A stretch of 64,000 nucleotides of DNA from Basidiobolus meristosporus CBS 931.73 (GCA_002104905.1 MCFE01000370.1:21186-85185); one strand, 5' to 3'; shown: positions 1,053-64,000, counted from the stretch's first letter. Made by a program: numbers and translations. The notes: a model not told the origin generated them from the sequence alone.

Positions 1053-1820
1053 GGGGAGTGTCGAGAAACAGAAAACGTGCTCTAAATTAGATAGAAGTCA
1101 ACCAGCCTCGCAAGTTGTGGATTTTTGGATTTGTTTACTTTTACTTGTGATTGTTATTATCAAAACATCGCAACGTTGTGGTAAATACCTATATATATAT
1201 TGGAAGTCTGGCAACCAGGGAGTGCATGGTGTTTGAATGCTCAAGATTTGGCTAATATGCTGAGTAAACTAAGCATTATTTAATCATGAACCAGTAGTAT
1301 CACCGCAGTCATATGGGCTGGATCGACCACTAAATTAAGACAAAGAGGTGCAAAGAATTGGTGTCAGATAGATCCCCAGATAATTAATTTTGGACTACCA
1401 ATCCAGAACCCCAAAGTCACACTAGCCATTTCGTAAAGAAAACTCCATGGTAAATTGGGAGATAACCAATATCTAGAACTACATGGACGAAGTGCCGAGC
1501 ACCAAGGAGGCTAAGCCACAGGAATAGAATATTATTAAGTTTTGCACATATGTAATACCGATGACTGAGATAATTGCTAATTCCTTAAGACCGATGATGA
1601 CTAAACGTACATACACTGGGGTGTTTACGGCCGATCCAGATAGCTCTTTGGTGCCTAGCCAATGGCCAATGTAGATAACGAACATGGATAGTTTCTTGGA
1701 AATCCGTTTTTTTTACTTACGAAATTCTCCGAGCCAATTACCCACTCACCATCCATGAGTATTCTGATACGGTATATAAACCGTCCATACTCAACCACAA
1801 CTGCACCCATTGAAGCTACA

Positions 1821-26583: not shown

Positions 26584-27492
26584 TTACCTAGTCTCTTTGT
26601 CAGCGTGTCTTTGGGCTTCCTTGGCGGCTTGGTTCGCCTTTTCTTGAGGCGATTCATATTTAGCTTTTGGCTTGGGTGGCTCGGCTGGTGTTTTGATTTG
26701 ATTCACTGCGCTCTGTGCGCTGCTCTTCACCCCTCCTGCAACCTCCTCAGCATACTCCTTCACCTGCTCCCCTCTGCTCTTGATCCCTTCACTCACCGAT
26801 CTGGCTGCATCCCCGGCCTCTTTTTGTGCCTTACCAACCACCTTGCCTGCGTACTCTCCGGCCTGACGAAGTGCTGGCTCGGCGTCTCCCATCACCTCAT
26901 TCGCCTTTGCTTGGGCGGATGCTGCTGCATCGGTCGCCTCTCTCTTCACTCCTTCCGCCCCGGCTCTGGCTCCATTCGCTGCTTGATTGGCCCTCAGTTC
27001 TGCCTCGCTGAGTGCCTTGTTCACCCCATGCTTGATCTTCGATTGCTGGCTCTCGACGAACTGCTGGCCAGTCTCCTTTCCTTGCTCCACCCTGGCCTTC
27101 ACCTCGTTCGTCACGTTCTTCGCCTTGATCTGTGTCTGCTCAGCAACCTGGTTGACCGTCTCCGTGGCCTTCTTGGCGACATTCTCGGACTGGTCGATCG
27201 CGTTGGCCAGCTTCTCGCCCGTTGCTTGGTTCAGCTTGTTCGCTGCCTCTTGCACTTTGCTGGCGGTGTTCGACAGAGTCTCTTGGATCTTGGAGACCAC
27301 GGTTTGCTTTTCCTGTGGCAATGATTGGGGTGGGATGGGTTAGCACATGGAAAGGAGGAAGCAAGCGAAGCAAGGACCACTAACCAAGACCTGGGCGTTG
27401 GTGTGGAACAGGCGAGGGGTATTTGCGGAGACTCGCACGGAGGTCAACATCCCGTACTGGGAGAGAGATTGGAGGAAAGTTCTGGATGTCAT
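26584..27492 (-). CDS. LEA-like amphipathic helical protein with predicted mitochondrial presequence, copy 1 (2 exons)
   Basis: ATG 27492 MTSRTFLQSLSQYGMLTSVRVSANTPRLFHTNAQVL, then a phase-0 intron (gttagt…gctaac…ccacag), then EKQTVVSKIQE…; body rich in A/E/K/Q. Confidence 0.8.
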
Positions 27493-28974
27493 ATTTACGA
27501 AAGAAACACTTTACACTCGAGAAGGAAAAATTAACAATGCAGTTGGAGTGGGCATGTTGGTAGTTATATAGGCTCACTCGGTGGGTTCAAGAACTACAAC
27601 GTCACTGCCAGCGTCTGACCGCCACCAACCAAGCCAGTCGTGAATCATCACTCTGTTTGGGTGAAGTCGATTTCTCGAGCCGTGTCGAGTGAATGGTTAC
27701 TCCAGCATGACTGCACCGCCTTTCCCGATTAGGACCTACGTGCGTCAAGATGAACGAAGGGATGATGGTGATTTCGAGGGGACAGATTGGCCAGAGTTTC
27801 GGGACCGGCTCCTACTTTCATGGGTGGTACTCACGTTGTAGGAGGCAACCTTAGCTTCACCTCCAAATTGGTCGACCACTGTGATTTGAATTACCGCCCT
27901 GCCAACTACGCATATACCCTCTGTAAGAGGAGGCTCTCATCATATACGATAGGGTCGGGATTTAGAGTGGTCGATTGCGTGATGCTGATGTATTTCCTAG
28001 TGACGTCAATGGGGATGATGACAGTTAGGTGCTACATTAAAGTGTAGACCCAACGAACCTGACGGAAATGGGATGGAATCATGATGCACGGGTGAGGAGG
28101 TGTCAGGCGCATAAATAATCGGAGGTTGATGGGCAGCATACAGCAATACATCGAATTCATTCCTACAATCACAGCAATATGGCATCCAGAACTTTCCTCC
28201 AATCTCTCTCCCAGTACGGGATGTTGACCTCCGTGCGAGTCTCCGCAAATACCCCTCGCCTGTTCCACACCAACGCCCAGGTCTTGGTTAGTGGCCCTTG
28301 CTTCGCTTGCTTCCTCCTTTCCATGTGCTAACCCACCCCACCCCAATCATTGCCACAGGAAAAGCAAACCGTGGTCTCCAAGATCCAAGAGACTCTGTCG
28401 AACACCGCCAGCAAAGTGCAAGAGGCAGCGAACAAGCTGAACCAAGCAACGGGTGAGAAGCTGGCCAACGCGATCGACCAGTCCGAGAATGTCGCCAAGA
28501 AGGCCACGGAGACGGTCAACCAGGTTGCTGAGGAGACACAGATCAAGGCGAAGAACGTGACGAACGAGGTGAAGGCCAGGGTGGAGCAAGGAAAGGAAAC
28601 TGGCCAGCAGTTCGTCGAGAGCCAGCAATCGAAGATCAAGCATGGGGTGAACAAGGCGCTCAGCGAGGCAGAACTGAGGGCCAATCAAGCAGCGAATGGA
28701 GCCAGAGCCGGGGCGGAAGGAGTGAAGAGAGAGGCGACCGATGCAGCAGCATCCGCCCAAGCAAAGGCGAATGAGGTGATGGGAGACGCCGAGCCAGCAC
28801 TTCGTCAGGCCGGAGAGTACGCAGGCAAGGTGGTTGGTAAGGCACAAAAAGAGGCCGGGGATGCAGCCAGATCGGTGAGTGAAGGGATCAAGAGCAGAGG
28901 GGAGCAGGTGAAGGAGTATGCTGAGGAGGTTGCAGGAGGGGTGAAGAGCAGCGCACAGAGCGCAGTGAATCAAA
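26697..28974. repeat. Large inverted repeat: arms ~26697-27495 and ~28176-28974 (~800 bp, ~99% identical) around a ~680 bp unique spacer
   Basis: The reverse complement of the left arm matches the right arm, including the intron. I found about 7 substitutions by eye. Confidence 0.95.
28001..28008. promoter_or_regulatory. ATF/CREB (CRE) palindrome in the shared divergent promoter of the LEA-like pair
   Basis: Perfect TGACGTCA. A TATA-like TATATAA on the minus strand near 27563-27569 faces the left gene. Function is inferred. Confidence 0.4.
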
Positions 28975-29147
28975 CCAAACCACAAGTAGAGCAGGTCAGA
29001 TCCGCGGTCAATCAAGGTAAAAAGGAAGCAACCAATACGGCGGCCCAAGTTACCGATCAAGCCCGGCAGGCGACCGAAAACGTTCAGCGAAAGGCCAAAG
29101 AGGCAGCCAAGGATGCCAAACACAAGGTAGATGAGTTCGCGCAATGA
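28179..29147 (+). CDS. LEA-like protein with predicted mitochondrial presequence, copy 2 (different C-terminus)
   Basis: ATG 28179 MASRTFLQSLSQ… with the same intron as copy 1; ends …KEAAKDAKHKVDEFAQ*. Confidence 0.8.
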
Positions 29148-41472: not shown

Positions 41473-43114
41473 CTACAACAGCCTTGATTTGCGCATCAAG
41501 TACCTGCGCTTCAGTTGGTTTGTTATGCGGTCAGGCTCGACGAAGGGATCCTTCAGCAGCTTCTGATACACCGCTGAGGCCTTTGCTACGTCGGAGCAAT
41601 TGACGTATCCCTGAATCAAACTGTTGTACGTTGTTGTGTTTGGCATCAGGTTGGAAGCCTCCATTTTCTGGACAGTTTCTTCTGCCTTCTCCATTTGCCC
41701 TGCTTTGGAATAGCCATTGACCATGATGTTGTAGGAAACAACATCGGGATGGACTGCATCCTGGGCCATAAGTGCCCAGGCCTTCTCGAAGTGTTGGTTC
41801 CGCACAAGCCCTTTGAGCAAGGTGTTATATGTTATGATATTGGGGGATAGATTCCGCGCAATCATTTCTTTGTACTTGGAATCTAGCCATTCTGGGGATT
41901 CGTATTCAGCCCCGAAATTCAAAAGGGTGTTGTACGTGACCACATCTGGCTTCACCCCTTTGGCATCCATCTCCGAAATGCACTGGTGAAACTGGGCTGG
42001 GCTACCTTGTGTCCTGTGGTAATTCAGTAGTGCATTGTAGATAATCGTGCTTCCGACGTATTCCGAATCGCGCAGGGCTTTGCTCAGCTTGTCGACTAGG
42101 TCGGCCCTTTTACTTCTCAAGCAACCAGCCAGCACAGTTTCGTATGTGACCTGTGTCGGTTTTAAGCCTCGCTTGGCCATATCTTCGTAGTACGCCACTG
42201 CTTGGCTGATATCGTTTCGACTTGTGCAAAGCTGTATCAATACATTGTACGTCTTTGTGGTAGGGAGAATGCCTTTCCGTAGCATCTCGTCGAAATATCG
42301 ACGCGCTTTGCCAACCTGCCCGTTCTTACCATAGCCATCAATTAAGATTGTGTAGGTGATGGCGTTGGGCTCGATATTGATCTTTTGCATTTCATTATAC
42401 ACTTGCAGAACCTTTTCCATTCGGTGGAGCTTTGCGTAGGTATCCATCAAATTATTGTAGAGCATTAAATTGGCCGGGATTCCTCGAATCACTAACTCCT
42501 GTTGATGCAGCTGAACCTCACCAAAGGTGCCAACTTGTTTGAGAACGGAAAAGAGAATGCAGTAGGTCACTCCGTTCAGCTGGACCCCCGAGGATTTCAT
42601 ATCCTTAAAAAGTGCCAGGGCTTTGGCAGGCTGTGTTTTGCCGAGTATATGGAAAACGCTATTGTAAACCGCTGTGGTAGGAGGCACGTTCAACTTTTTC
42701 ATCTTGTCGAATAACTGAAGGACGGAGGAAAGGTCGCCCAATTTTCCGAATAGGATGATCGCTTGGTTGAAGGTTCGTTGCTTTTGAAAGCCTGCTTCTT
42801 TGAGGTAAGCGAGGATGCTGTCAAGCTTGCTAGGGTCTACCTGGTCGAGGTTTCGATGCAGCTGGTTGATGAAAAGTCTCGTGGTTCGCTCAGGGATGTT
42901 GTTAGGTTCATTGGGGGAAACCTGGAGAAAAGTGTCTATCGCTTTGTTGAGTTCTTCGCGCCCATTCGGCCACATTGCTAAGGTCGAAAGGAAGTAAAAC
43001 TGGCTTAGGAGTTGGTAGGCTGGTTGTCAGAAGACGTGGTGCGTACTGGAAACATTTGAAACGCAACGAAGACACTCGCAATAGACCAGGTCGATAGAAG
43101 GTTGGGGCGAGCAT
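41473..43114 (-). CDS. PPR protein with about 12 tandem P-class repeats; N-terminal exon structure uncertain
   Basis: Repeated motifs such as PNAITYTILIDGYGKNG and PDVVTYNTLL in ORF 41473-42975. The upstream presequence-like ORF (ATG 43114) is in a different frame and needs an intron with a weak donor to join. Confidence 0.85.
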
Positions 43115-43287
43115 GGATGCAGTGACTAAAATAACTAATCAAGCACAATGACAAAGGTTTCACTGATTTATCCGTCAAATTATTCCTTAGGAAAGCTGAG
43201 AAAAATGGCGAAATAAACGGTCACCGAGTCTAAGGTATATATTTATTATAAATTAAGGTACGAATTTTAGTGTCAAGGCATGGGTTG

Positions 43288-45099
43288 CTAACGTCTTTTG
43301 CCTTTCTTGCTTTTCTTGATATCCTCCCACCGTACTCCAGGTGCTAGCGCATGTCCGGTGACTTTGATGTGAGTGAATAGCTGATTGCGCGATGGATAGA
43401 CGGATTCGCAAACGTTGCAAATGAACTAAGAAACAGCCATGAGTGACCAGTAAAGGGTGCCTTGATAGAATACAACTTACATGTTCGTCAGCATCAATAT
43501 CGGCATCCTCGACTGACTTGGCGGCTTTCTTGATCTTCTCTTCCTTAGCCTGCTTTCGCTTCTCCTTCTTCAATTTTGCCCTTCCTTTGGGCTTGTCGGT
43601 GGTATCATCTATATCGTCGTTATCGTTGACAGGCGCCGGCTGCTCTGTAGGCTCTTCTTCATAGATTTCCTCACCATACATAGGTGTAGACTTGTTACGC
43701 TTGCCTTTCTTTTTCTTGCTCTTTCCTAATGTTGTGGCTTGCAGCAATTCCGACAGATCATCTTCATCGTTTTCTTCGGAAAGAACGGGTGGGACGTTAT
43801 CCTGAAGGGGAATAGGGCTTTCTGAACTGCTCACCTCTTCGTCAGAGATTATTGGAAATTGTTCAGGGTCGGTGGTTTCTCCGTCGAAGGGCACTTCCGA
43901 GTCGATGACCGAAGCAGTTCCAGATAGCAACTCTTCATCGGCGAGAAGCTCTTCTCGTAGTAACTCTACTTGTTTGATGTGCTTCTTTGACTTTTCGTGA
44001 TTGATCCACTGCTTCTCTGATTTGAAAGCTTTATTGCAAGCAGCACAGTACAGCTCATCTGGATAGATCTCTTCTGATTCGTACTCCTCGCTGTCCCTTA
44101 AATATTCACCGAAGGCTTCATCAATAGCTTCGTCGTTTACCTTGGCCCAGGCTTGCTCTTGATAGCTCTGTGCTTGCGCCATTTTTTCCGCCTTTTCTTT
44201 GGCCACTCTTTGCTTTTGCTCAAGAGCCTTGGCTTCACGCTGGGCTTGGAAAGCATCCATATACGCCTTCACTCTAGGGTCTCTCTTCTTTATGAAGGCT
44301 ACCAAATTTCGGACGGTCTCGTTGTATTCTTTTTTGGCCGCATCTCTTAGCTTTTGGTTCTCCTTCTCCATTGCTCTCTTGTATCTTCTGTTGGGAGCTT
44401 CGGAAAGACGGTGTTGATCACACCAAGCAAAGCTCTTGAAGGTGGAAAAGTTCAACCAGTAATTGTAGAATTCTCGGAGAGAACTTTCTTCTTCGTTCTC
44501 CTCATCGTAACCAGTCTTGCTATTTCCGAAAGCCATGAGGGACGCCCAATGTGGCTCCATACCACCGTCGTCTGTAAATGCCTCCTGCTCCTCCGTGGTT
44601 AACCGAGTGAAGAGATCGCGGTAGGTTGAGTAAAAACCGCCTGGCTTATCGTTGTAGCCGCTGAAGGCAGATACGCTGAAGTACGACATGAGATCTGACA
44701 AGGTAGTTCCGGCAGAAGAATCCTCAGTATTTCCGGTATGGGATTCGCCACGCAGAATAGCATCTCGATGAGAATCGTACCTATATTATGTGTACAGAGT
44801 CAACATAAAGTACCGAGAAATCATGCTGATTAAGGTATGGTACCATGCTCGCTCCTGCGGATCAGACAGTACTTCGTAAGCCGATTGAATCTCAGCAAAT
44901 ACTTTGGTGGCCTCCTCAACTCGATGGTGGTTCTTATCTGGAGAGGCAAGGCGGCTGAGTTGAGAGTTCCCCAAATGTTACTTCATAGACTCTAGTTACC
45001 TGGATGCCACTCCAACGCCTTACGACGATAGGCTTTCTTGAGATCGCTATCGTCGGCTGTTTTCTCCACCCCTAATAACTCATAATAGCAAGTACGCAT
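43288..45099 (-). CDS. JJJ1: DnaJ protein Jjj1/DNAJC21 (J domain plus two C2H2 zinc fingers)
   Basis: [11 protein letters not shown]…KALEWHP|[53 protein letters not shown]; last exon [23 protein letters not shown]. Confidence 0.93.
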
Positions 45100-48495: not shown

Positions 48496-48990
48496 TTATT
48501 TCAACTCGGGCATTCGAAGGATAACTTTCTGCTCATTCTTTGAGTGCTCCACCAAAGTTTTGAAGATTGAGAGCTTGCTGATATGTTCAGGGGCCTCCTT
48601 CTTACTAGTGCACCAGTAGTAGATGTCCCAGTCTGGCTGATCCATGAAATGGTCGAATTCGCAGAGTTCCTCTTCGGTCATATTGGGAAGATACTTCTTT
48701 GAAAAGGTCGAGAGTAAAAGGTCGGTTTCCAAAATTCCTCTCTTGCGGCATTGGTAAAGAAGACGGGCCCGCTTCTGCTCCACACCCTCGTTAGTTCTCT
48801 GAATAGGGGGAAGCGTTGGATATGGTTTTTCAAACTCGTCCACAGTTCCGACTGGCCCGTTGCCTGGATTGGGGTATAGTTCCGAGCGTGCCAAAATAGA
48901 GGAAGAGAGGTTTCTGGTTGAGACGCGGCTTCTCAGCTGGGAAAGAACAGTGTATCGTGGGAGGCTGCTGAATGCTCTGAGGGAATGCAT
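48496..48990 (-). CDS. SDH5: Succinate dehydrogenase assembly factor 2 (flavinylation factor)
   Basis: KRARLLYQCRKRGILETDLLLSTF…DWDIYYWCT, with a mitochondrial presequence from ATG 48990. Confidence 0.95.
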   Translation of the reverse strand: MHSLRAFSSLPRYTVLSQLRSRVSTRNLSSSILARSELYPNPGNGPVGTVDEFEKPYPTLPPIQRTNEGVEQKRARLLYQCRKRGILETDLLLSTFSKKYLPNMTEEELCEFDHFMDQPDWDIYYWCTSKKEAPEHISKLSIFKTLVEHSKNEQKVILRMPELK

Positions 48991-49401
48991 GGCGGCGGTG
49001 GTAGTAGGGTAGACTGTTTCGTGGAGGAGGAAAATGATAAAACCCTTCAATACGCATACGAATTTATACCTCATCCATACTGATGACACCTTTTGACATA
49101 AATCAACTACTATAGGTTTAATTTAAATATTCTTCCCCACAAATCGACGAATAAAGCATGCTTTTCACCTAGCTCCTGAATCTCGTATTGAATGGCCAAG
49201 ATCGGAGACAGATATTGCGGCAACCGCGCGCATCAATGTGACCGCCCTTTTTTTTGTTCCTATATCGTCTAGTGAGTGTTCAAATAGCATATATTTCGTG
49301 ATATCTTAATCTCGTAACTTTTCCTCAGGCGACCTCAGTATCTACTCGGGAGGCCCTATATACCACAGCAGAATTCCTTTGAACAACCCTACATTCCCTT
49401 T

Positions 49402-52400
49402 ATGTCGGAGTCTACAATAGACGATACCAACCCAAATAATGAGCCGAACCTATCCAAAGTGTTGGGGATCGAGGTCCTGGATCAGGACGTCTTGGAGCGC
49501 AATGTCATCGCTGAGGTATGTTCCCAGTATAAGCATCCATTTTTTAGAATGAATACCCACCTTCGCGGTTTGTTTTGTCAAGGCCGACAAAGAAATGACA
49601 AAGAAAGAGGTTGAGAATGAGCAAAAGCGTCTAAAGAAGACCCAAGACAGGATCCTGAAGTTAAGAGAGCAAATGTCAGCTTTAGAAGACAAATTAGACA
49701 GCCAGGAGCTCACTCAACGCGTTGTTGAGTCTACGCAAAAGAAGCTGGTCAAGTTGGAAAGTCAATTGGAAACTCTGCTTCAGGACGAAAAGGATATCAT
49801 GAGTAGACTAGTCTCGAGTGAGAAGAAAATAAGCATCATGGAAAACGCCAGTTCTGCGAGCGCGCATGTTGGTGAATCGGAACGGGAGCGCCTCATACGA
49901 ACCGGCAAGATCACTCCGTTCTCAAACTTGGGCGGGCTAGAGAAGACCATAAAGAGCGTAAAACTCGAGTCAAAATCTATGCGAGACCTCAAACGGCCTG
50001 CGTTATCATTAGACGACGTAACCCTTCCAAAGAGCAAGAGAACTCATTCGCCTGGTGGACAAAGTGATGGGAACGACTCCGACTTCATCAAATCTGACTC
50101 TGAAGAGGATTACAACGACGAATCCATGCTCGACCTTTTCCCCGACGACATTGACGATGAAGGCGATCTAGAGGAGACTGACAAGCAATCCTCCAAAGGG
50201 AAAACGAAGCAAGGTCGCAATAAAGAGCAATACAGATTCAGTTTTACTGATGATGGAAACGAATCTTATTATCAAGTATTTATTTCAAAGCAGCCTTAGG
50301 AGAACAATCGAGGCTTTGATTTATTGACATCGCATTATCTAGAAACGTGTATACAATTGGGCGAAAAAACGTCGGCTATTAAGAATGGTTTACAACAAAG
50401 TGGGTAACTTTATTTGTGGGTCAGCATGCGAAACGCGACTTATACTACTGTAACTAGGAAATCGATGCCGGGGTCCACGCCGACGAATTCGATGAAGTAT
50501 TAGGCCCCAACTTTGACCCGATGAGTGAGGCTCAGATGCCACACCCTAGCATCCCAGATGCCACTTTTGATGGAGGATTTCGAGTCCCCGGTGATATCTA
50601 CTCGAATCTGTTTGATTACCAGAAAACATGTATGTTGTCTTTGAGTCTTTAGAAACATATCGATCGCATATTTTCTAAGCTCGCTTACTTAGGCAATCAA
50701 TGGCTCTGGGAATTACATTGCCAAGAAGTGGGCGGGATCATCGGTGACGAGATGGTGAGAAGGAATACTGGAACGTTGTTGATCCGGATACTGATGTAAT
50801 ATTTCTCAAGGGGCTTGGAAAAACTGTCCAAGTTATCTCATACCTGGGTGCTCTCATGTACTCTGGAATGATGGACAAGCCTGTGCTTATAGTGTGTCCC
50901 GCGACATTATTGAAACAGTGGGTCAAAGAGTTCCATCGTTGGTGGCCTCCGATGCGTGTTGCCATATTGCACTCCAGTGGTAGCGGGTTGTCCCTTCTAA
51001 GAGACAATATCCAGGGCAGCAGCGGGGTTCTTCCTCTTGATGACGAAGATGATTCGGATGATTACGCAAAACCAAAGAAAAAGGGGAAGAGTAAAGGGAA
51101 GAAGAAAAACTTCGAAGCAAAGGATCGTCCCGAAGTCGAGCACCTTGTGGAGCGCATATACTCACAGGGGCATGTCTTGGTTACCACATATGCCTGTGTG
51201 TCCAATTACCGAAGGCATCTCCTGACTCGCAAATGGGGATATGTCATACTGGACGAAGGGCATAAGATTCGGAATCCGGATGCGGAAGTAACTCTCGCGT
51301 GCAAACGACTCAAAACCCCCCATCGCATCATTCTCTCCGGGACTCCGATCCAGAACAACTTGACAGAGCTTTGGTCATTATTTGATTTTGTGTTTCCAGG
51401 CCGTCTAGGGACCCTTCCCGTGTTCCAGAGCCAATTCGCCATCCCCATCAATATAGGAGGGTTTGCGAACGCCAACAATTTCCAGGTCCAAACGGCGTAC
51501 AAATGTGCGTGCATTTTGCGTGATCTCATCAACCCTTACCTGCTGCGACGGATGAAGGTTGATGTTGCCACCGACCTGCCTAAGAAGAGTGAGCAGGTGC
51601 TTTTCTGTCGACTCACCCCGCAGCAGCGCGAGGCGTATGAGACCTTTCTTCGGTCGAATGAAATGGAGAGCATACTTTCTGGAAGAAGGCATGCACTATT
51701 TGGGATCGACATAGTTCGAAAAATATGCAATCATCCTGACCTGATAACTCTTGATTTGTTGCGGGAAAAGAATTCGAGTTACGGCCAACCGGAGAAATCA
51801 GGAAAGATGCAGGTGGTCAAAGCGCTTCTCGAGCTATGGAAGCCGCAGAATCATCGAGTCCTTCTGTTTTCGCAGACTAGACAGATGCAAGACATCCTCG
51901 AGCAGTTCATCCAATCTCTAGGCTACGAGTATCGTAGAATGGATGGGACCACTCCCATACAGTATCGTATCCCACTGGTGGAGGAGTTCAATACGCACGA
52001 GGAGATTTACGTGTTTCTGCTAACAACCAAGGTGGGTGGTCTAGGTCTCAACTTGACCAGTGCTGATCGAGTGATCATCTATGACCCCGATTGGAATCCT
52101 TCCACAGATATGCAGGCGAGAGAGCGTGCCTGGCGTCTAGGACAAAAGAAAGAGGTGACAATCTTTCGCCTGATGACATCCGGAACTATCGAGGAGAAGA
52201 TTTACCACCGCCAGATCTTCAAGCAGTTTCTCACCAACAAAATCCTGAAGGACCCGAAGCAGAAGCGCTTCTTTCAAGCCCATGACCTGCACGATTTATT
52301 CAAGTTGGGTACTGACGAGGAGGAAACCGAGACAGGAGTCATCTTCGCTGGAACAGAGATCCTGAAAAAGAATCGTCCCAAAAGTCAGGCCAAGTCAGAG

Positions 52401-53338
52401 GCCAAAGCCAAGCCAAACGACCTACAGGCCCTGCCCGATGTCGCTGGTGTGGAAGACTAGTATCCTTTTTTGATGTGCATAGCAAATTTCTCTCGCAGTA
52501 GCGTACCGGTATCCTTGACCATGACTAATTCTGCAGCAAATTCCCCGATGCCCAATCTAGTGCCACCACAGATCCCAGTGAAAACAATGACGAAGATCGG
52601 ATTCTTTCCAGTTTGTTTGAACTTACAGGTATTCACAGCGCCCTGAAGCATGACACCCTACTGGATGCAGCTCGACAAGAGGACATCCTGGTGGAGCAAG
52701 AGGCCAATCGAATTGCCGAACGGGCGGTTGCCGCGCTTCGTGCGTCAAGAAAGAAGCGCAATAGGTCGGATATCGGGGTTCCAACCTGGACCGGAAGATC
52801 TGGCACGGCAGGTGCAATGGCCACCGCGAAACCTCGGTTCGGCCAGAAGCAGAACCCCAATCTACCCACGTTCGGAGCACAGCCATCGAAAAGCGACCCG
52901 GACACCCAGAGCTCCCCCAGATTTGGCAGTGGTAGCATGTCAGGATTTCGTGGGAATAGTGGGGATGTCTCGTCCAGTTCGATCTTGAAAAACCTACGGG
53001 ATCGTGGTGTCTCCGAAGGGACCGATGCTCCGTCAAGTAATGAACCATTGAATTCGCCCCGTCCCGTTTCTTCCCGCCCACTGAACCATTTTCCCTTGAT
53101 TGTAGGCCCGTCCATGTTGGACCCCGACTCCCAAGAAGGGTTGATCCTAAAGATCCGGGATTACCTCTACGCGTATGGTGGACGTGCTAGCACCTCGGAT
53201 ATCGTGACCAACTTCAAGTTGAAGATTCGTGGCGAGGAGGTCGCGGTGTTCCGAAAAATGCTCAAGTCCATCGCCACCTTTGAGAAAGACCCCAGCAGTG
53301 GTAAGGGGTGGTGGTGTCTCAAAGCGGAATTTGTGTGA
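49402..53338 (+). CDS. RAD26: Rad26/Rhp26/CSB (ERCC6) SNF2-family ATPase, multi-exon
   Basis: [46 protein letters not shown] and [11 protein letters not shown] motifs; GVPTWTG motif; C-terminal winged-helix domain. Confidence 0.96.
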
Positions 53339-53577
53339 TGGTCGAGCTTGTGCTCCCGTGTAACATAAGGGATTTTGTTGATAATATGTGACATGTGATA
53401 TACTCGGGGGAACCACCCGATCCTTGTGAGTAAATGTGTAATATAGTCTGTTTGTTTGGTGATTTCGCGCCAACCATAAAGTCGATCTGTCTGCACCCAT
53501 GTATGCATTCACCCCGTTGCAGATGATGATCCGTCTAGCCCTACCTGTTTCCATTGTGTGGTGTGGCAAGCTTTCCG

Positions 53578-55544
53578 AGAACTTGAGAGATTCCAATTGA
53601 GTTTGTAGCAGTTGAATCTGTACACTGGGCCACCTGTTTAGACCACCAAGAGCAATTTACAGCTTGTTCATTGGCCCAGTTCTATTATTGGAGGTATCAA
53701 CAATCACAAGACATTTGGTTGGGTGGAATTGGCAGCTCTGTTCTGATGGAATACCTATGGTTGCAGGCCTTGCTTTAGGGGCTAGGTGGAGCCATGAATA
53801 TGCAAGTACTTGGACATGATTTGCAGTAGGTGTGGCTCTCCATAGGTTGCTTATGGAGTTGCAAATTAAGCTTGTGAGATATTGACAAGCTCTATAAATG
53901 GATTCTTGTTAAAGACCAGCAGGAGTTTAAGTCTCTTCAAATTTATTACTAACAGTAGCAGAAGTTCTAGCCTGCCCTATGAAAAATGAGCTTGATGATC
54001 CCATTAAATGGCCATCACATAACCCTATGAAAAATATCTTGGTCCCACAGGTGGGTCCAATCCAGATCAGCTGTCAAGATCCTGCAATGAGTCTGTCATA
54101 ATGCCAGCAGCTTGGAATTATTGACCCTCCACACAATCTTATGATGGGATTGTGATGGCATTTTGCTGATTTTACTGCCAAATAAAGTTAAAAACTTGAT
54201 GGTGTTTGAGCAGTCTTTTGACAAGAATTGCATGGCATTCTGATGGTCTTAATGTGCTCTACATTTATTTGAGTGGACCTAACTGGCCAATACATCCAGT
54301 TGCCTTACATGGCAAGAGACTTGACAGTGTTCTGAGAGCCTCATTGCAAACCTCTGCTGGCATTGCAATGGCAGCATACAGCTAGCTCTGTATGATGCTA
54401 CCATACCAATTTACCAAATGGTATTTTCTTTTTCTACCTCTCCTTGTGCCATTCATATTACCACTGTAGAATCACCCCTCTTTATTTGCTTACCCACTAC
54501 TACCTTGGGTATTCCACATATATACCTCTACATACATGCACACCTGCTGCAATTGACACACTTCCATCAACTCACCTTTACAGCTTTTTAGTGTGATACT
54601 CACAAAATTGCCATATACCTTGCATTGCTGGAAACATATACATCTTACAAACATATGCTTGCTTGCCACCACCCTTGCCATGAATACCTCCTGAATATTC
54701 ACAAAGAACCTCTTGGTATTTAGCCAATATATTTCTTCTCCCTGCAGGATTCTAGTCCCCATTATAGGTGTGCTCTGGCTCTTGTCTGTGTGAATTCTGT
54801 ATTGAGTGGTGTAGAAGCTGGCTTGTGACCAAGAGAAAGCCAGCATACTTTGGTAAAGTTGTCCTAACAAAAATTAGTTGCTTGTTGCACCCAACCCAAC
54901 TTTGCACTACTTGACTGATTACCCATGTATTGGGGCTGCTTAGTTTCTGAATGCAAAAGACATAAGTGTCTCCATGTACACATCTGTTCTCAGTACTTTC
55001 CAACTCTTCCTGGCTGTCCTCCATATGCCAACTCATCACATCCATGACAGACTTGAAGGTAATATTCTTGATGAGATTAGGATATGGTGGTACCTGCAAC
55101 TTGACTTGTCTTCCCATCTCCCCACATGTCCACTTGAACAGAAACTCCCAAAAGGTGAAGCTAGGCCCCATATTTTCCACACACCAAGCAAGATGGAGTA
55201 GAGATTGGATACAGTATTGGCAGAGATCTACACATTCAACTTTATGCTTGTAGCATAGCTGCTCAAATCCCTTGTGAAAAATAATTTGGTCCTAGCAGCA
55301 GAGATCTATGCATTCAGCTTTATGTTTGTAGTAAAGCCACTCAAATTTCATCACAAACTCTTTGCACAAAAGCTGTAGATGCATCAAGTTGGCATTGGTG
55401 ATCTGCTTCTGGATAAATATTCCTACAATGTCCATATATGACTCCCAATGATTCTAATGTACTACTGGTAGAAATGGCTTCAGATGGCCACCTGAATAAG
55501 TACATATCCAGCTCATTCAGTCTTTGCATTGGTATTGTTGCATA
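53578..55544. mobile_element. Decayed CpG-free repeat remnant, possibly a non-LTR retrotransposon fragment on the minus strand
   Basis: No CpG seen. Broken minus-strand ORFs include …RQVKLQVPP…ENRCVHGDTYVFCIQ…NTW, loosely like the LINE zf-RVT region. Family assignment is weak. Confidence 0.35.
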
Positions 55545-55893
55545 TGTTGTAAAAATTTGTATTTCCACCTAAATATTCACCTAACTTAGTCACTTAGATC
55601 ATTACCTTCATATTATAGAGAATACTAACCAAATTCCTTGTTGGGATTTACTTAGAATATTATCACCAAAATACCAGGTACCCAGAACATGAAAATTCTC
55701 AAAGTTGTCCAAGCAGCTCCAAACTTTGCACACATATTCTTGGGACCTTCCTTAACCTATTCTATGTGTTTGCTATGCCAAGACCATGTAAAAGTATAAA
55801 TACTACTTCTGCATTCAATATATCATTAAGTGAAAACCACATAATCTACTTGTTCTCCCAATCACTTCCAATATCTCCAAGACTCTTACAACA
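55545..55893 (+). repeat. LTR 1 (349 bp) of the copia family
   Basis: TGTTG…CAACA termini, followed by PBS-like ggctatgagccc at 55894. Confidence 0.92.
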
Positions 55894-58401
55894 GGCTATG
55901 AGCCCCAAGCTGTCACTCTCTGGAATGACTAATACTGCTATTACTGGAATTTTCCCCTCTGCTGAAAAGTTGGATGGATCCAACTACCAAGTGTGGAAGG
56001 TGAAGATGAAGATGCTGCTACAAGAAAGAGGCCTTTGGGATATTGTCATGGGAGAAGAATGCACTCCTAAAAGTGTGGGAGAGGAAGCCTTGAAGTACCA
56101 GAAGAAAGAACAAAGTGCCTTTAACTGCTTTTGCATTAATGTTAAAGACAAATTGCTAATTCAATGCTCAAGAGCAAAAACGGCAAAGAATGCCTGGAAG
56201 GCATTAGAACACACCTACCAGTCATGTTCAGCTGCCAAGAAAATGTATCTGAGAAGAAAATTCTTTACTACAAAGATGCTGCCAGGAGAAGAAATGAAAA
56301 ATCTAATTAACAGAATTACCCTGCTGGTAGATGAGATGGAATCTGTGGGCGTACCAACTACTGATGAGGATGTGATAGTTACCATCCTGAATAGCCTGAT
56401 AGACAAGTTTCAGGGCCTTGTATCAGCCCTAGAGTCCAGAACTGAAGATTTGACCTTAAATTACATATATAGACGGCTCCTGGATGAAGAATTAAGAAAA
56501 TCAAGCGCCAATAAGAAGGAAGAAGAAAATGCTTTACTAAGCAATGATAACCAACAAAGGAGGTACCCAAAGTCCTAGAAAGGCAACAGCAACCTGTTTT
56601 GTAACTACTGCAAAAGGAAAGGACACATATCAGATTGGTGTCTCAAAAAGAAAGATAATCAGCAAGAGAAGCCTGAATATGAAAATGCTGCAACAACTGA
56701 AGATAGACTATTCATATCTGCACTAGATATGACCACAAACAAGGATTCTCAGATGTGGTATATTGACTCTGGAGCATCTCAACACTTAACACACCAAAAA
56801 GAACTTTTTACCCAATATCAAGAAATTCCAATTTAGAAGGTTTTCATGGGTGACAATAGAACACTTGATGCAGTGGGAGAAGGAATTATCCAAGTAAGCC
56901 TAAGAAGCAGAGAGGCAAGCCATACACTGACCTTTAAAGAAGCACTCTATGTACCAGACATAGCCAAGAACCTACTATTGGTAAGCAAGGCCACTGCAGA
57001 AGGACTCAGTTTCAGCTTTGTCAATTCTGGATGCACAATTACTGATCAAAATGGTGCCCATATTGCTTTGGGTATCAGAGATCAGAATCTACACAAGTTG
57101 CCTTATATTCCATCATATTTGGAAGCCAATATAAGTAACTTAATTGAAGAAACACCAATGCTTTGGCACAGGAGATTTGGGCACATCAATTTTGACTATT
57201 TGCACAAAATAATCAAAGATCAGCTAATTTCTGGAGTAAAAATTGATCCCCCAGCTAATTTGGAGCACTGTGAGGCCTGCATATATGGGGAACAAGCCAG
57301 ACAACTGTTCAAGAGCTCTGTGCTGATCAAAACTAAGAAAAAATTAGATCTAATCCACTCAGATCTGTATGGACCTATGCAAAATTTATCATTAGGCAGG
57401 ATGAAGTATTTAATCACTTTTATTGATGATTATACAAGATACACATGGGTCTACTTCATGGAGAGAAAGGAAGAAGCTCTGTCTAAGTTCAGGGAATTTA
57501 AAGCCATGGTGTAGAGAGAAACTGGTGGAAAAATCAAGAAAATACGCTCTGACAATGGCGGAGAATATACCTCAAAGCTCTTCATCCACTTCTGCAAAAT
57601 TCATGGGATAAAGCAAGAGACTACTGTACCATACTCCCCACAGCAAAATGGAGTAGCAGAATGTGCTAATAGATCAATAATTGATATGGCAAGATCTATG
57701 ATTCATGATCAAAAATTATTCTATGATTTTTGGGCAGATTCAGTTGCCACTGCTGTATATCTTAAAAATAGGAGTTATAACAGAATACTTTGTGATTCTA
57801 CTCCATTTGAGGCATGGTATGGATGCAGATCAAGTGCAGAACATCTAAGAATATTTGGGTGTACAGCATATGCCAAGAAACTGCCTGGAAATCAGTCAAA
57901 ATTTGAGCCAAAAAGTGTAAAATTCATATTTTTGGGCTACTTCAATGAGAGTAAAGCATACAGACTCTACAATACCAAAGCAAAGAAGCTAATCAAGTCC
58001 AGGGATGTGTTTTTTGATGAAAATTCAAACTTTCACAAAAAATGACATCAGATGATGACAAAAACTTGATCTCAAGTCCACCAATAGTCAGGATTGAATC
58101 AGAGCAAAACAATGAAAATTTTTTCACTGCAGAGGACTCTTCAATCATTGTTCAGCTAGAATCAGTGCCTAGGAGTCTCCCAGAAATGATCATTCCAGTA
58201 TCAAATGCCCAGAGATCAAATCGGACAAGAAATAGCCCAAATTACTATACCAATGGGGGTACAAACTTAGCCTATGCCTAATCAGTCCATATTGATGAGC
58301 CCCAGACTGTAAAAGAGGCCCTAAATAGCCCTCTGACAAAGTTTTGGAGATCTGCAATGACTGAGGAATATCAGGCCCTGATGGAAAATCAAACTTGGGA
58401 C
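55545..58401 (+). mobile_element. Ty1/copia element A (gag, zinc knuckle, protease, integrase, start of RT), decayed and interrupted in RT by an insertion
   Basis: KLDGSNYQVWK, CNYCKRKGHISDWC, WYIDSGASQH, LWHRRFGH…CEAC, HSDLYGP, FIDDYTR and SDNGGEY motifs, with stops and frameshifts. It ends at ENQTWD where a new LTR starts. Confidence 0.93.
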
Positions 58402-58694
58402 TGTTGTAAAAATTTGTAATTCCACCTAAATATTCACCTAACTTAGTCACTTAGATCATTACCCTCATATCCTAGAGAATACTGACCAAAATCCTTGTTG
58501 GGATTTACTTAGAATATTTTCACCAAAATACTAGGTACCCAGAACATGAAAATTCTCAAAGTTGTCCAAACAGCCCTAAACTTTGCACACGTGTTCTTGG
58601 GACCTTCCTTAACCTATTCTATGTGTTTGAAATGTCAAGACCAGGTAAAAGTATAAATACTACTTTTACATTCAATAAATCATTAAGTGAAAAC
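58402..58694 (+). repeat. LTR 2, 3'-truncated by insertion of LTR 3
   Basis: Same LTR sequence from tgttgtaaaa; breaks at gtgaaaac, where intact copies continue cacataatc. Confidence 0.9.
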
Positions 58695-61600
58695 TGTTGT
58701 AAAAGTTTGTATTTCCACCTAAATATTCACCTAACTTAGTCACTTAGATCATCACCTTCAAATCATAGAGAATACTGACCAAATTCCTTGTTGGGATTTA
58801 CTAAGAATATTTTCACCAAAATGCCAGGTACCCAGAACATGAAAATTCTCAAAGTTGTCCAAACAGCCCCAAACTTTGCACACATATTCTTGGGACATTC
58901 CTTAACCTATTCTACATGTTTGTAATGCCAAGACCAGGTAAAAGTATAAATACTACTTTTACATTCAATAAATCATTAAGTGAAAACCACATAATCTACT
59001 TGTTCTCCCAATCACTTCCAATATCTCCAAGACTCTTACAACAGGCTATGAGCCCCAAGCTGTCACTCTCTGCAATGTCTACTACTGTTATTACTGGAAC
59101 TTTTCCCTCTGCTGAAAAGTTGGATGGCTCTAACTACCAAGTGTGGAGGGTGAAGATGAAGATGCTGCTACAAGAAAGAGGCCTTTGGGATATTGTCATG
59201 GGAGAAGAATGCCCTCCTAAAAACATGGGAGAGGAAGCCTTAAAGTACCAGAAGAAAGAACAAAGTGCCTTTAACTGCATTTGCCTTAATGTCAAGGACA
59301 AATTGCTAATTCAATGCTCAAGAGCAAAAAACGGCAAAGAATGCTTGGAAAGCATTGGAAGACACCTACCAGTCATGTTCAGCTGCTAAGAAGATGTATC
59401 AAATATAGAAGTACTCTATGTACCAGACATAGCCAAGAACCTACTCTCTGTAAGCAAGGCCACAGCAGAAGGACTCAGTTTCAGTTTTGACAATTCTGGA
59501 TGCAGGATCACTGATCAAAATGGTGCCCATATTGCTTTGGGAATCAGAGATCAGAATCTATACAGGTTGACTTATATTCCATCACACTTGGAAGCCAATA
59601 TAAGTAACTTAAATGAAGAAACACCAATGCTTTGGCACAGGAGATTTGGACATATCAATTTTGATTATTTGCGCAAAATGATCAAAGATCAGCTAATTTC
59701 TGGAGTAAAAATTGATCCCCCAGCTAATTTGGAGCACTGTGAAGCCTGCATATATGGGAAACAAGCCAGACAACCGTTCAAGGGCTCTGGGTTAATCAAA
59801 ACTAAGAAAAAATTAGATCTAATTCACTCAGATCTGTGTGGACCTATGCAACATTTACCCTCAGGCAGGATGAAGTATTTAATCACTTTTATTGATGATT
59901 ATACAAGATACACATGGGTCTACTTCATGGAGAGAAAGGAAGAAGCTCTGTCTAAGTTCAGGGAGTTTAAAGTCATGGTGGAGAGAGAAACTGGTGAAAA
60001 AATCAAGAAAATTTGCTCTGACAATGGTGGAGAATATACCTCAAAACTCTTCATCCACTTCTGCAAAATTCATGGGATAAAGCAAGAGACTACTGTACCA
60101 TACTCCCCACAGCAAAATGGAGTAGCAGAACAAGCTAACAGATCAATAATTGATATGGCAAGATCTATGATCCATGATCAAAAATTATCTTATGATTTTT
60201 GGGCGGAATCAGTTGCCACCGCTGTATACCTTAAAAATAGGAGCTATAACAGAATACTTTGTGATTCTACTCCATTTGAAGCATGGTATGGATACAGACC
60301 AAGTGCAGAACATCTAAGAGTATTTGGGTGTACAGCATATGCCAAAAAACTGGCCGGAAATCAGTCAAAATTTGAGCCAAAAAGTGTAAAATGCATATTT
60401 TTGAGCTACTGCAATGAGAGTAAGGCATACAGACTCTACAATACCAAAGCAAAGAAGCTAATCAAGTCCAGGGATGTGTTGTTTGATGAAAATTCAAAAT
60501 TTTCACAAAAAATGATATCAGATGATGACCAAAATTTTGATCTCAAGTCCACCAATTGTCAGGATTGAATCAGAGCAAACTAATGAAAATTTTTTCACTC
60601 CAGAGGACTCTACAACCATGGTTCAGCCAGAATCAGTGCCCAGGAATATCCCAGAAGTGATCATTCCAGTATCAAATGCCCAAAGATCCAATTGGACAAG
60701 AAATAGCCCAAATTACTATATTAATGAGGGTACAAACTTAGCCTATGCCTATTCAGTCCATGTTGATGAGCCCCAGACTGTAAAAGAGGCCCTAGATAGC
60801 CCTCAGACAAAGTTTTGGAGATCTGCAATGACTGAGGAATATCAGGCACTGATGGAAAATCAAACTTGGGACTTAGTCAAATTACCAATCAACCAAAAAT
60901 CAATTGGATACAGATGGGTCTTCAAGACAAAATACAAGGCTGATGGTACAATTGAAAGATACAAAGCAATACTTGTAGCCAAAGGATACTCTCAAACAAA
61001 AGGACTTGACTATACTGAGACCTTTGCACCAGTAGCCAAGTTTAATTCCATCAGATTAATATTGGCTGTTGCAGCCAAATATAAGTTTTTTATTCATCAA
61101 ATGGATGTAAAAACTGCATTTTTGAATGGAGAACTTAATGAGGACGTGTGTATGGACCAGCCTGATGGGTTTGCTGACCAAAATAACCTCCATTTGGTCT
61201 GCAAGCTTAAAAAGTCACTATATGGTCTCAAACAATCACCAAGAGCCTGGAATTGCAAGATAGATTCTTATTTGGAATCTTTGAGTTTCAAAAGAAGTAA
61301 TGCTGACTATAGTATATACTATAAGCCAGATAGAGCAAATCCAGTTCTATTAGCTCTATATGTGGATGATCTTATTATAGCCACCAATAACCTAGAAACA
61401 TTGGAAGAGACTAAATCCAGCCTATCTAAGGAGTTCAAGATGTCCGATCTAGGAGAACTTAGTTACTACTTAGGGATTAAGTTCTCCATAGACAGAAGTA
61501 CCCAGACTATTACCCTAAGCCAATCTAAGTATATTCAAGATATACTAAAGAAGTACAAAATGGAAGACTGTAAACCAGCAGCCACCCCAATGGAGACAAC

Positions 61601-62698
61601 CCTTAACTTGGTCAAAACTCTACCAAATCAAGAGAGCTTGGTGCCATCTGAAAGCCCTGACTTTCCTTATCAATCTATGGTTGGCAGTCTGATGTATATC
61701 ATGCTTGGAACACGTCCAGATATCTCATATTCAGTGGGAGTTGGCAGCCAACATAATCAGAATTATGGATCTGATCATATTGCAGCAGTTAAGCGGATTT
61801 TCAGATACCTAAAAGGAACTGCTGATATCTGCTTAAGATACACTTATAAGGATTCAGAACAGGATCTTGTGGGCTACTCTGATGCTGATTGGGGATGAAA
61901 TTTGGAAGACAGAAGATCCACCACAGGATACACCTTTCTTTACTGTAAAGGAGCAATTTCATGGAATTCAAGAAAGCAACCAACTGTAGCACTTTCTACT
62001 ACAGAGGCAGAGTATATGGCAGCCTGTGAAGCTACAAAAGAAGCAATGTGGTTAAGAAAGCTCCTTACAGATTTAGGCCTATGTCAAAAAACGCCTTTTA
62101 CTTTATTTCAAGATAATCAAGCATGTATACAATTAGGTAGAAATCCAACTTTTCATGCTAGAACCAAGCACATAGATATTAGACATCATTTCATACGTGA
62201 AGCTATAGAGAATAACTTAGTTAGCTTAGTTTACTGTCCTACAGATGAAATGATTGCAGACATATTTACCAAACCATTAGCTAGAGACAAGTTTGAATAT
62301 CTTAGGTCAAAATTAGGACTAGTCAGTATGAACATTTGGCTGAGTGGGAGTGTTGTAAAAATTCGTATTTCCACCTAAATATTCACCTAACTTAGTCACT
62401 TAGATCATCACCTTCAAATCTTAGAGAATACTGACCAATTTCCTTGTCGGGATTTACTTAGAATATTTTCACCAAAATACCAGGTACCCAGAACATGAAA
62501 GTTCTCAAAGTTGTCCAAACAGCCCCAAACTTTGCACACATGTTCTTGGGACCTTCCTTAACCTATTCTACATGTTTGTAATGCCAAGACTAGGTAAAAG
62601 TATAAGTACTACTTTACATTCAATAAATCATTAAGTGAAAACCACATAATCTACTTGTTCTCCAAATCACTTCCAATATCTCCAAGACTCTTACAACA
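58695..62698 (+). mobile_element. Ty1/copia element C1: LTR3 (58695-59043), gag-protease deletion, IN, RT, RNase H, PPT, LTR4 (62351-62698)
   Basis: PBS at 59044. gag KKMY is fused to the protease end (YVPDIAKNL) near 59400. RT motifs QMDVKTAFLNG, LYGLKQS and YVDDL; RNase H DRRSTTGY; PPT gagtgggag immediately before LTR4. Confidence 0.95.
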
Positions 62699-64000
62699 GG
62701 TTATGAGCCCCAAGCTGTCACTCTCTGCAACGTCTACTACTGCTATTACTGGAATTTTTCCCTCTGCTGAAAAGTTGGATGGCTCTAACTACCAAGTGTG
62801 GAAGGTGAAGATAAAGATGCTGCTACAAGAAAGAGGCCTTTGGGATATTGTCATGGGAGAAGAATGCCCTCCTAAAAACATGGGAGAGGAAGCCTTAAAG
62901 TACCAGAAGAAAGAACAAAGTGCCTTTAACTGCATTTGCCTTAATGTCACGGACAAATTGCTAATTCAATACTCAAGAGCAAAAACGGCAAAGAATGCCT
63001 AGAAGGCCTTAGAACACAGCTACCAGTCATGTTCAGCTGCCAAGAAAATGTGTCTGAGAAGAAAATTCTTTACTACAAAGATGCTGCCAGGAGAAGAAAT
63101 GAAAAATCTAATTAACAGAATTACCCTGCTGGTAGATGAGATGGAATCTGTGGGCGTACCAACTACTGATGAGGATGTGCTAGTTACCATCCTGAATAGC
63201 CTGACAGACAAGTTTCAAGGCCTTGTATCAGCCCTAGAGTCCAGAACTGAAGACTTGACCTTACATTATGTATATGGAAGGCTCCTGGATGAAGAATTAA
63301 GAAAATCAAGCGCCAATAAGAAGGAAGAAGAAAATGCTTTAATAAGCAATGATAGCCAACAAAGGAGGTACCCAAGACCCTACAAAGGCAACAGCAACTT
63401 ATTTTGCAACTACTGCAAAAGGAAAGGACACACATCAGACCGGTGTCTCAAAAAGAGAGATTATCAGCAAAAGAAGCCTGAATATGGAAATGCTGCAACA
63501 ACTGAAGATAGACTATTCATATCTGCACTAAATATGACCACAAACAAGGATTCTCAGATGTGGTATATTGACTCTGGAACTTCTCAACACTTTACACACC
63601 AAAAAGAACTTTTTACCCAATATCAAGAAATTCCAATTAAGAAGGTTTTCAGGGATGACCATAGAACACTTGATGCAGTGGGAGAAGGAACTATCCAAGT
63701 AAACCTTAGAAGCAGTGAAGGAAGCCATACACTGACCTTTAAAGAAGCACTCTATGTACCAGACATAGCCAAGAACCTACTCTCTGTAAGCAAGGCTACA
63801 GCAGAAGGACTCAGTTTCAGTTTTGACAATTCTGGATGCAGGATCACTGATCAAAGTGATGCCCATATTGATTTAGGCATCAGAGATCAAAATCTTTACA
63901 AGTTGACTTATGTTCCATCATATCTGGAAGCCAATATAAGTAACTTAAGTGAAGAAACACCAATGCTTTGGCACAGGAGATTTGGACACATCAATTTTGA
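62351..64000 (+). mobile_element. Ty1/copia element C2 sharing LTR4 as its 5' LTR; runs off the window
   Basis: LTR4 is followed directly by PBS ggttatgagccc (62699), gag with a premature stop, zinc knuckle, WYIDSGTSQH protease and LWHRRFGH. Confidence 0.92.

Follow-up and report, generated by a model that had tools for sequence, protein, structure and literature searches.

In vertebrates and plants, methylated CpG sites decay by deamination of 5-methylcytosine (5mC), and the methylation is maintained by DNMT1-UHRF1 or MET1-VIM. In the fungal group Pucciniomycotina, a TpCpG-biased hypermutation of transposons was reportedly described by Hood in 2005. Such hypermutation is documented in Microbotryum, Puccinia, Melampsora and Rhodotorula (PMC3318451, PMC4352252). 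Horns et al. left open whether the T bias of these fungi reflects a process similar to repeat-induced point mutation (RIP) or an unrecognised property of methylation (PMC3318451). Amselem et al. associated this CpG signature with enzymes of the Masc2/DNMT1 type, in genomes devoid of RID (PMC4352252). The Pucciniomycotina are Basidiomycota. Here, we describe a CpG-depleted block in a distant, early-diverging fungus, Basidiobolus meristosporus CBS 931.73. The block corresponds to positions 53578-64000 of a 64,000-nt stretch of DNA (GCA_002104905.1, MCFE01000370.1:21186-85185), called the window below. All coordinates are positions in this window, counted from its first letter. The block is a nest of transposons at the contig end, in which an older tnp2/CACTA-like fragment was invaded by a three-copy Ty1/copia array. 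The entire CpG-poor region is mobile DNA of two unrelated classes. We propose that its lack of CpG probably results from methylation of transposon CpGs followed by deamination.

The block contains 28 CG dinucleotides, against 389.9 expected from base composition (observed/expected ratio, o/e, 0.072; 2.7 per kb). The host DNA located upstream (1-53577) contains 2315 CG, with an o/e of 0.801 and a density of 43.2 per kb. A CG-free run of 2605 bp extends between the CG at 53576 and the CG at 56181. Outside the block, the longest stretch without CG is 204 bp, and ln P for the 2605-bp run is -115 given the host CG density. In 500-bp windows, the maximum o/e of the block (0.27) is below the minimum of the host (0.37), without overlap of the two ranges. 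The G+C content drops from 0.465 in the host to 0.387 in the block. TG and CA are both elevated in the block (o/e 1.41 and 1.22, respectively), and TA is not (o/e 0.76 in the block, 0.71 in the host). Apart from CG, TG and CA, dinucleotides have o/e values of 0.76-1.23 in the block. CpG loss is limited to transposon DNA, host coding and non-coding DNA being normal up to 53576. The preliminary description of this DNA had reported a near-absence of CG in 53578-64000, with no CG at all in 53578-56180, and had suggested a sliding CpG o/e as a check. The exact counts agree with the first statement, and block and host windows are fully separated by the second. We likewise observe that the loss is confined to transposon DNA. 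It affects CpG specifically, and the resulting TG and CA are in excess. The differences between repeat copies that had been quoted are all present in the long terminal repeats (LTRs; TTCGTA versus TTTGTA, GTCGGG versus GTTGGG) and in the integrase. Finally, the block does adjoin RAD26, whose last open reading frame (ORF) ends at 53338.

Several of these features recall methyl-CpG decay in vertebrates and plants. The loss is specific to CpG and is accompanied by a gain of TG and CA, at a rate that may be at least one order of magnitude above that of other substitutions. In both cases, elements are CpG-poor and unmethylated genes are CpG-rich, and a UHRF1-like gene is found in the window. Unlike in vertebrates, where depletion is about five-fold on average (PMC13297926), it is deeper here (o/e 0.07 overall and 0.00 over 2 kb). 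The strong bias linked to a flanking T and the wholly unaffected state of the flanking host DNA also set the locus apart from vertebrates and plants.

With RIP of Neurospora, the locus shares irreversible C-to-T changes in repeated or mobile DNA. However, the target of Neurospora RIP is CpA, changed to TpA, versus CpG here, and a long near-identical duplication is spared in the window. Neurospora RIP is recognized by a TpA/ApT index above 0.89 and a (CpA+TpG)/(ApC+GpT) index below 1.03. The corresponding values in the block are 0.79 and 1.57. Both values lie outside these limits, which excludes Neurospora-type RIP, as the preliminary description had already argued. In alignments of 55545-56249, 58695-59400 and 62351-63054, and of 56935-57195 with its copies, polarisation by majority gave 27 single-copy C>T changes. 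CpA is the context of 16 of them, versus about 40% expected. This excess is weak and was not accepted as evidence of Neurospora-like RIP.

Region 55545-64000 was identified from its sequence as Ty1/copia. Pfam matches from 55545 onward follow the copia order, with Retrotran_gag_2, gag_pre-integrs, rve, SH3_retrovirus and RVT_2. Self-comparison revealed four LTRs of 293 bp, 92-96% identical and each beginning with TGTTG, as well as three internal regions (C1 to C3), all on the plus strand. LTR A (55545-55837) is the 5' LTR of C1. The internal part of C1 (55838-58401) contains a gag ORF (55766-56578; Retrotran_gag_2 match, 1.5e-39), gag_pre-integrase and Pol_BBD regions, and an integrase (56846-57511 and 57515-58042) split by an in-frame stop at 57512. 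The reverse transcriptase (RT) and RNase H of this copy are deleted, so that the start of RT directly joins the next LTR. This one, LTR B (58400-58694), is likely the 3' LTR of C1 and abuts LTR C (58695-58987), the 5' LTR of C2. The internal part of C2 (58988-62350) contains the start of gag (58916-59389), an integrase (59537-60568; rve, 2.6e-16), an RT (60522-61898; RVT_2, 4.6e-83) and an ORF for the C-terminal part of pol (61902-62378) that has no Pfam match. C2 is interrupted by a 685-bp deletion in gag/protease at 59400/59404, a frameshift between integrase and RT, and one stop after RT. A purine run immediately precedes LTR D (62351-62643), which is both the 3' LTR of C2 and the 5' LTR of C3. 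The internal part of C3 (62644-64000), from gag to the start of the integrase, is cut at the window end, which is also the contig end, as the contig is 85185 nt long and the window starts at an offset of 21185. Region 62351-64000 matches 55545-57195 at 93.3%. The closest relative of the RT (P0001) is metagenomic and 75% identical.

LTRs C and D differ by 4.1%, and the remaining pairs by 6.1-7.9%. The LTR tree is ((A,B),(C,D)), with 4 derived sites common to A and B versus C and D. Its terminal branches carry 10, 7, 4 and 6 changes, that is 1.4-3.4%. The array has the order LTR-internal-LTR, LTR-internal-LTR-internal, two LTRs abutting at 58694/58695 and LTR D being common to two internal regions (62643/62644). 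Such abutting and shared LTRs suggest that the array results from unequal recombination among elements and not from insertions simply nested in one another.

The remaining part of the block (53578-55544, minus strand) probably corresponds to a decayed tnp2/CACTA-type DNA transposon fragment, of the type in which Transposase_21 is found with a DUF4218-like region. It has 0 CG versus 83 expected. A Pfam search with seven open pieces of 53578-55545 gave no credible match; DUF4218 and DUF6830, obtained as atlas leads, are to be taken as leads only. An open piece of 179 residues (54755-55291, minus strand) matches a region that is conserved at the C-terminus of tnp2-type transposases. A search with this piece in the full protein library returned 44 proteins (best 6.9e-19), several of which bear Transposase_21 and/or DUF4218. 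Its nearest relative (P0121) is 38% identical (BLASTP, 2e-26). The near-invariant PMER motif is replaced by LFKW, with Trp in place of Arg, and three more arginines of the nearest relative are replaced by Gln, Gln and Lys. The fragment covers only the C-terminal DUF4218-like region, its N-terminal side being cut by the copia array. We therefore consider that 53578-55544 probably derives from a DNA transposon of the CACTA/tnp2 type, of which it represents the C-terminal part, the copia array now occupying the place expected for the catalytic domain. A CACTG sequence at 53623, 47 bp past the last host CG, is a candidate terminus of this element, whose other end is beyond the contig.

A first layer of the depletion is inherited. 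In the copia ORFs, Arg is encoded by AGA or AGG 80 times and by CGN (N, any base) 6 times (7%), versus 69% CGN in host ORFs. Arg represents 4.65% of the codons in copia ORFs and 5.24% in the host. In transposon ORFs, CpG is about 10-fold low at each of the three codon phases, and codons ending in A or T are favoured, unlike in the host. Decay of CGN yields TGN or CAN, never AGR (R, A or G). Therefore, the AGR shift must have arisen under selection in a functional lineage. The same tendency is found in Pucciniomycotina, whose own transposon lineages are poor in target sites that would alter proteins (PMC3318451). We then considered conserved-Arg columns, defined in the integrase and RT alignments as those with Arg in at least 70% of copia homologues. 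At 25 such columns, C2 has 11 AGR, 2 CGN, 6 Cys, Trp or Gln codons and 6 others. AGR thus accounts for 11 of the 19 informative columns, and the CGN share of conserved Arg in the source element is estimated at about 40% at most. Ile (ATA) is found at three conserved-Arg columns of copia pol (57926, 60395 and two C2 RT columns), one of them in both C1 and C2. Such an Ile codon would derive from AGA through a G>T transversion, and it may reflect either a substitution specific to the lineage or noise in the alignment.

Comparison of the C1 and C2 integrases gives a dS of 0.146 and a dN of 0.046 (omega 0.32). Synonymous differences number 31, whereas a neutral simulation, in which the observed changes are scattered randomly on the same integrase sequence, gives 20.4 +/- 3.6 (P=0.003). 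From these values and the LTR tree, about one quarter of the difference between copies would have arisen in active elements and about three quarters after insertion. The copia copies now have 2.5-4.4 CG per kb. As at least half of the CpGs that could be traced were lost, roughly 5-12 CG per kb would have been present at insertion (o/e of about 0.15-0.3, versus 0.8 in the host). Taken with the codon usage, these data indicate that the active copia lineage was CpG-poor before insertion and that the larger part of the depletion came with the element; we infer its cause below. A stronger reading, in which nearly all the depletion predates insertion, was softened in view of the LTR tree, the neutral simulation and the conserved-Arg columns.

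The CpG content at insertion also bears on the edge of the block. The host spacer 3' of RAD26 (53339-53577, 239 bp) contains 10 CG (o/e 0.78), the last one at 53576. Because this spacer has a host-like CpG content, the composition step is located to within about 50 bp. The active copia lineage had become CpG-poor before these copies inserted. The sharp edge is therefore an insertion junction, with host DNA giving way to transposon DNA at 53577. The edge had previously been described as a limit between euchromatin and heterochromatin. Nothing at the locus shows such a chromatin boundary.

A second layer corresponds to decay in place. In the integrase motif LRSDNGGEY, Arg is encoded by CGC in C1 (57545; KIRSD) and replaced by TGC in C2 (60014; KICSD). 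In the motif NGVAER, the Arg codon is TGT in C1 (57662; AEC) and CAA in C2 (60131; AEQ). This arginine was lost independently in the two copies, through changes on opposite strands. Finally, for an Arg that precedes the RT domain, C1 has a CGG codon and C2 has TGG instead. Homologues indicate the direction of change at these three conserved-Arg CpG sites, and losses occurred at 4 of the 6 lineage-sites, over a neutral drift of 1.4-3.4%. Among the differences between copies that affect two adjacent positions, TG versus CA is also the most frequent, with 8 pair counts at 4 sites, versus 3 counts for the type ranked second. A rough estimate, based on about six sites in three partial copies, would put the CpG transition rate at 10-40 times the average substitution rate. 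CpG decay after insertion is therefore supported at the few sites of known direction. Many of the 28 remaining CGs may be new, rather than relics. Polarisation of copy-specific CGs by majority rule was discarded both ways, as hypermutable sites mislead parsimony and the counts fit both models. The preliminary description spoke of an erasure of CpG at the locus. Some CpGs do seem to have been lost in place, as seen at the conserved-Arg columns, but AGR codons and the synonymous excess indicate that most of the depletion was not produced here.

The flanks of the remaining CGs are biased. Both flanks of the 28 CGs were pooled, although flanks of the same CG are not independent observations. TCG or CGA accounts for 4 of 56 (7%) in the block; in the host, this share reaches 32.5% (Fisher P=1e-5). 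Relative to the host and per NC dinucleotide, retention is 0.016 for TCG, 0.104 for ACG, 0.114 for CCG and 0.095 for GCG. In other words, TCG/CGA is depleted about 60-fold and ACG, CCG and GCG about 10-fold each, so that TCG is about six times more depleted. TTG being the commonest NTG, random new CGs would favour TCG; the rarity of TCG therefore argues for its faster removal. The three CGs common to the copies are all in V-CG-B contexts (V, not T; B, not A). On the copia sense strand, 3 TCG and 1 CGA remain, so that both are depleted, without strand asymmetry. Cytosines in TCA or TCT contexts are not depleted. As in Pucciniomycotina, C>T loss affects transposon copies, TCG is the worst hit context and a RID-type gene is undetected in the published inventory (PMC10538959). 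In contrast with Microbotryum, where the target is described as strictly TpCpG, the three other contexts are strongly affected here too.

An inverted gene duplication (26679-28992) provides an internal control. Its two arms (26679-27495 and 28176-28992) are 817 bp long and 98.5% identical. They keep 45 and 44 CG, including 29 and 27 TCG+CGA, with an o/e of 0.68. Only 2 of the 12 differences between the arms involve CpG. This near-identical duplicate retains its CpGs, which makes a purely duplication-triggered process unlikely. Selection or gene conversion acting on the gene pair could nevertheless hide damage. The arms have a G+C content of 0.57 and are 680 bp apart. Of the 12 differences, five are clustered in the initial 18 bp of the arm, a pattern that the border of a gene-conversion tract would produce.

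We consider that methylation of transposon CpGs followed by deamination probably explains the lack of CpG. Cytosine methylation would be directed at the CpGs of transposons, and a maintenance system of the DNMT1-UHRF1 type would preserve the mark. Deamination of 5mC would then change CG to TG or CA, fastest where a T precedes the C. In the first layer, the copia lineage would have been exposed for a long time while active, so that most CGN Arg codons would have been replaced by AGA or AGG and silent CpGs purged. In the second layer, after insertion and without selection, residual CpGs would decay, including those in Arg codons conserved in the family. The outcome would be an o/e of 0.07-0.11 in the copia copies and of zero in the older DNA transposon fragment. 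As for the machinery, the published B. meristosporus inventory lists DNMT1 (ORX99839), two Dim2-like enzymes, UHRF1, two HELLS and the CDCA7-like protein CDCA7F; DNMT3, DNMT4/RID and DNMT5 were undetected (PMC10538959 source data). Pucciniomycotina have only DNMT1/Masc2-type methyltransferases, to which the Basidiobolus inventory adds UHRF1, HELLS and the CDCA7-like protein (PMC10538959).

Several observations weigh against this proposal. The 5mC entry for B. meristosporus is blank in the same study (PMC10538959), and we found no literature report of 5mC or of CpG depletion in Basidiobolus. The numbers, including all rates, derive from three partial copia copies. Most single-copy CGs have an ambiguous direction and would be equally well explained as new CGs created by T>C; singletons of this kind are found at 5 of 147 TG sites, versus 26 of 446 other sites. 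Finally, no known regulatory methylation favours TCG over VCG (Horns et al., PMC3318451), and passive decay alone would be insufficient to account for the T-flank bias. The preliminary description had left the choice between dense 5mCpG and a RIP-like process. The intact CpGs of the duplicate and the moderate rate estimate would favour methylation.

Active hypermutation resembling RIP is possible, but we find it doubtful. A life-stage-specific enzyme would mutate the C of (T)CpG sites to T in repeats or transposons, instead of a slow decay of methylated sites. This would account for the six-fold stronger depletion of TCG/CGA, for the total erasure over 2 kb (0 CG versus 83 expected) and for the abrupt end of the effect, at most about 50 bp from the limit of the transposons. 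It would also fit with a T bias that lies outside known methylation patterns, as argued by Horns et al. (PMC3318451). However, DNMT4/RID is undetected in the published inventory (PMC10538959), and VCG is depleted about 10-fold as well, which does not fit a strict TpCpG target such as that described for Microbotryum. The 817-bp duplicate is untouched, even if selection and gene conversion could mask an effect. In addition, a 10-40-fold rate requires no burst, and the differences between copies are mostly ordinary transitions and transversions. We regard as unlikely a dedicated, transposon-targeted C-to-T hypermutation with TCG preference, driven in an early-diverging fungus devoid of RID by DNMT1, a Dim2-like enzyme or a deaminase. 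If true, a RIP-like TpCpG defence would either date back to the ancestor of fungi or have arisen on two occasions, and the CGN purge of copia would be an evolved escape from this defence.

It is also improbable that the block reflects an intrinsic composition in which present-day methylation plays no part. The elements would belong to lineages that avoid CpG-directed silencing, or would come from a CpG-poor donor, and the step would mark foreign DNA. AGR usage and the synonymous excess indeed point to a functional lineage that was already CpG-poor. The preference of transposon ORFs for codons ending in A or T, unlike the host, and the metagenomic origin of the nearest RT relative, only 75% identical, are consistent with such an origin. 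Against it, two unrelated classes of transposons are both depleted, and dead copies have lost conserved CGN Arg codons to TGN or CAN, independently and on either strand. Editing of retrotransposon cDNA during reverse transcription by an APOBEC-like deaminase with TC preference would match the T flank, as such enzymes favour TC, but is highly improbable and was rejected. CpG loss is most complete in the DNA transposon fragment, although such an element does not pass through cDNA. Moreover, TCG and CGA are both low on the copia sense strand without asymmetry, and TCA/TCT cytosines are not depleted.

Host genes of the window have a normal CpG content. RAD26/ERCC6 (50856-53338, plus strand), the last host gene before the block, is made of long ORFs at 50856-52460 and 52613-53338. 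Pfam matches are SNF2-rel_dom (4.3e-67) and Helicase_C (2.5e-24), and the best matches among solved structures are 8he5_O (E 1.8e-211) and yeast RAD26 (5.6e-198). The CpG o/e of this region is 0.81-0.94. At the other end of the window, the N-terminal part of a UHRF1-like gene (35-1097, minus strand) encodes a ubiquitin-like domain, a PHD and the start of an SRA domain, and leaves the window at its left edge. The corresponding Pfam matches are ubiquitin (5.3e-08), PHD (1e-09) and SAD_SRA (1.3e-06). The last one covers the first 35 positions of the truncated domain, and its 28.6 bits are below the curated cut-off of 30.7 owing to this truncation. No tandem Tudor domain was found by Pfam between the ubiquitin-like domain and the PHD in the scanned pieces. 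The presence of a UHRF1 gene in the window had been put forward in favour of methylation. The UHRF1-like gene is real, but it is represented by its N-terminal part only and is 52 kb away from the block, so that it counts as part of the inventory and not as linkage. A single-exon gene (41473-42975, minus strand) encodes a 500-residue protein with ten PPR_2 repeats. Its best non-self word-search matches are plant PPR proteins (22-29% identity), with none fungal among the 120 matches listed. Two ordinary host genes with normal CpG, also on the minus strand, encode a zuotin-like protein that bears a C2H2 jaz zinc finger (43253-44701) and the flavinator Sdh5 (48496-49089).

In early-diverging fungi, N6-methyladenine is usually reported to be abundant and 5mC scarce (PMC8298701). 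A deep CpG footprint, restricted to transposons and located beside CpG-normal genes, suggests otherwise for B. meristosporus. It would imply that this lineage has, or recently had, an efficient defence against transposons based on cytosine methylation. The T-flank bias extends the signature of rusts and smuts to a distant phylum, and its enzymatic basis is testable in a culturable organism. The present locus provides codon and selection evidence for active elements purged beforehand, a rate estimate and a boundary explained as an insertion junction. Since the elements are already AGR-shifted, CpG content alone overestimates mutation at a given locus. Active elements would evolve under pressure, with Arg codons moving from CGN to AGR.

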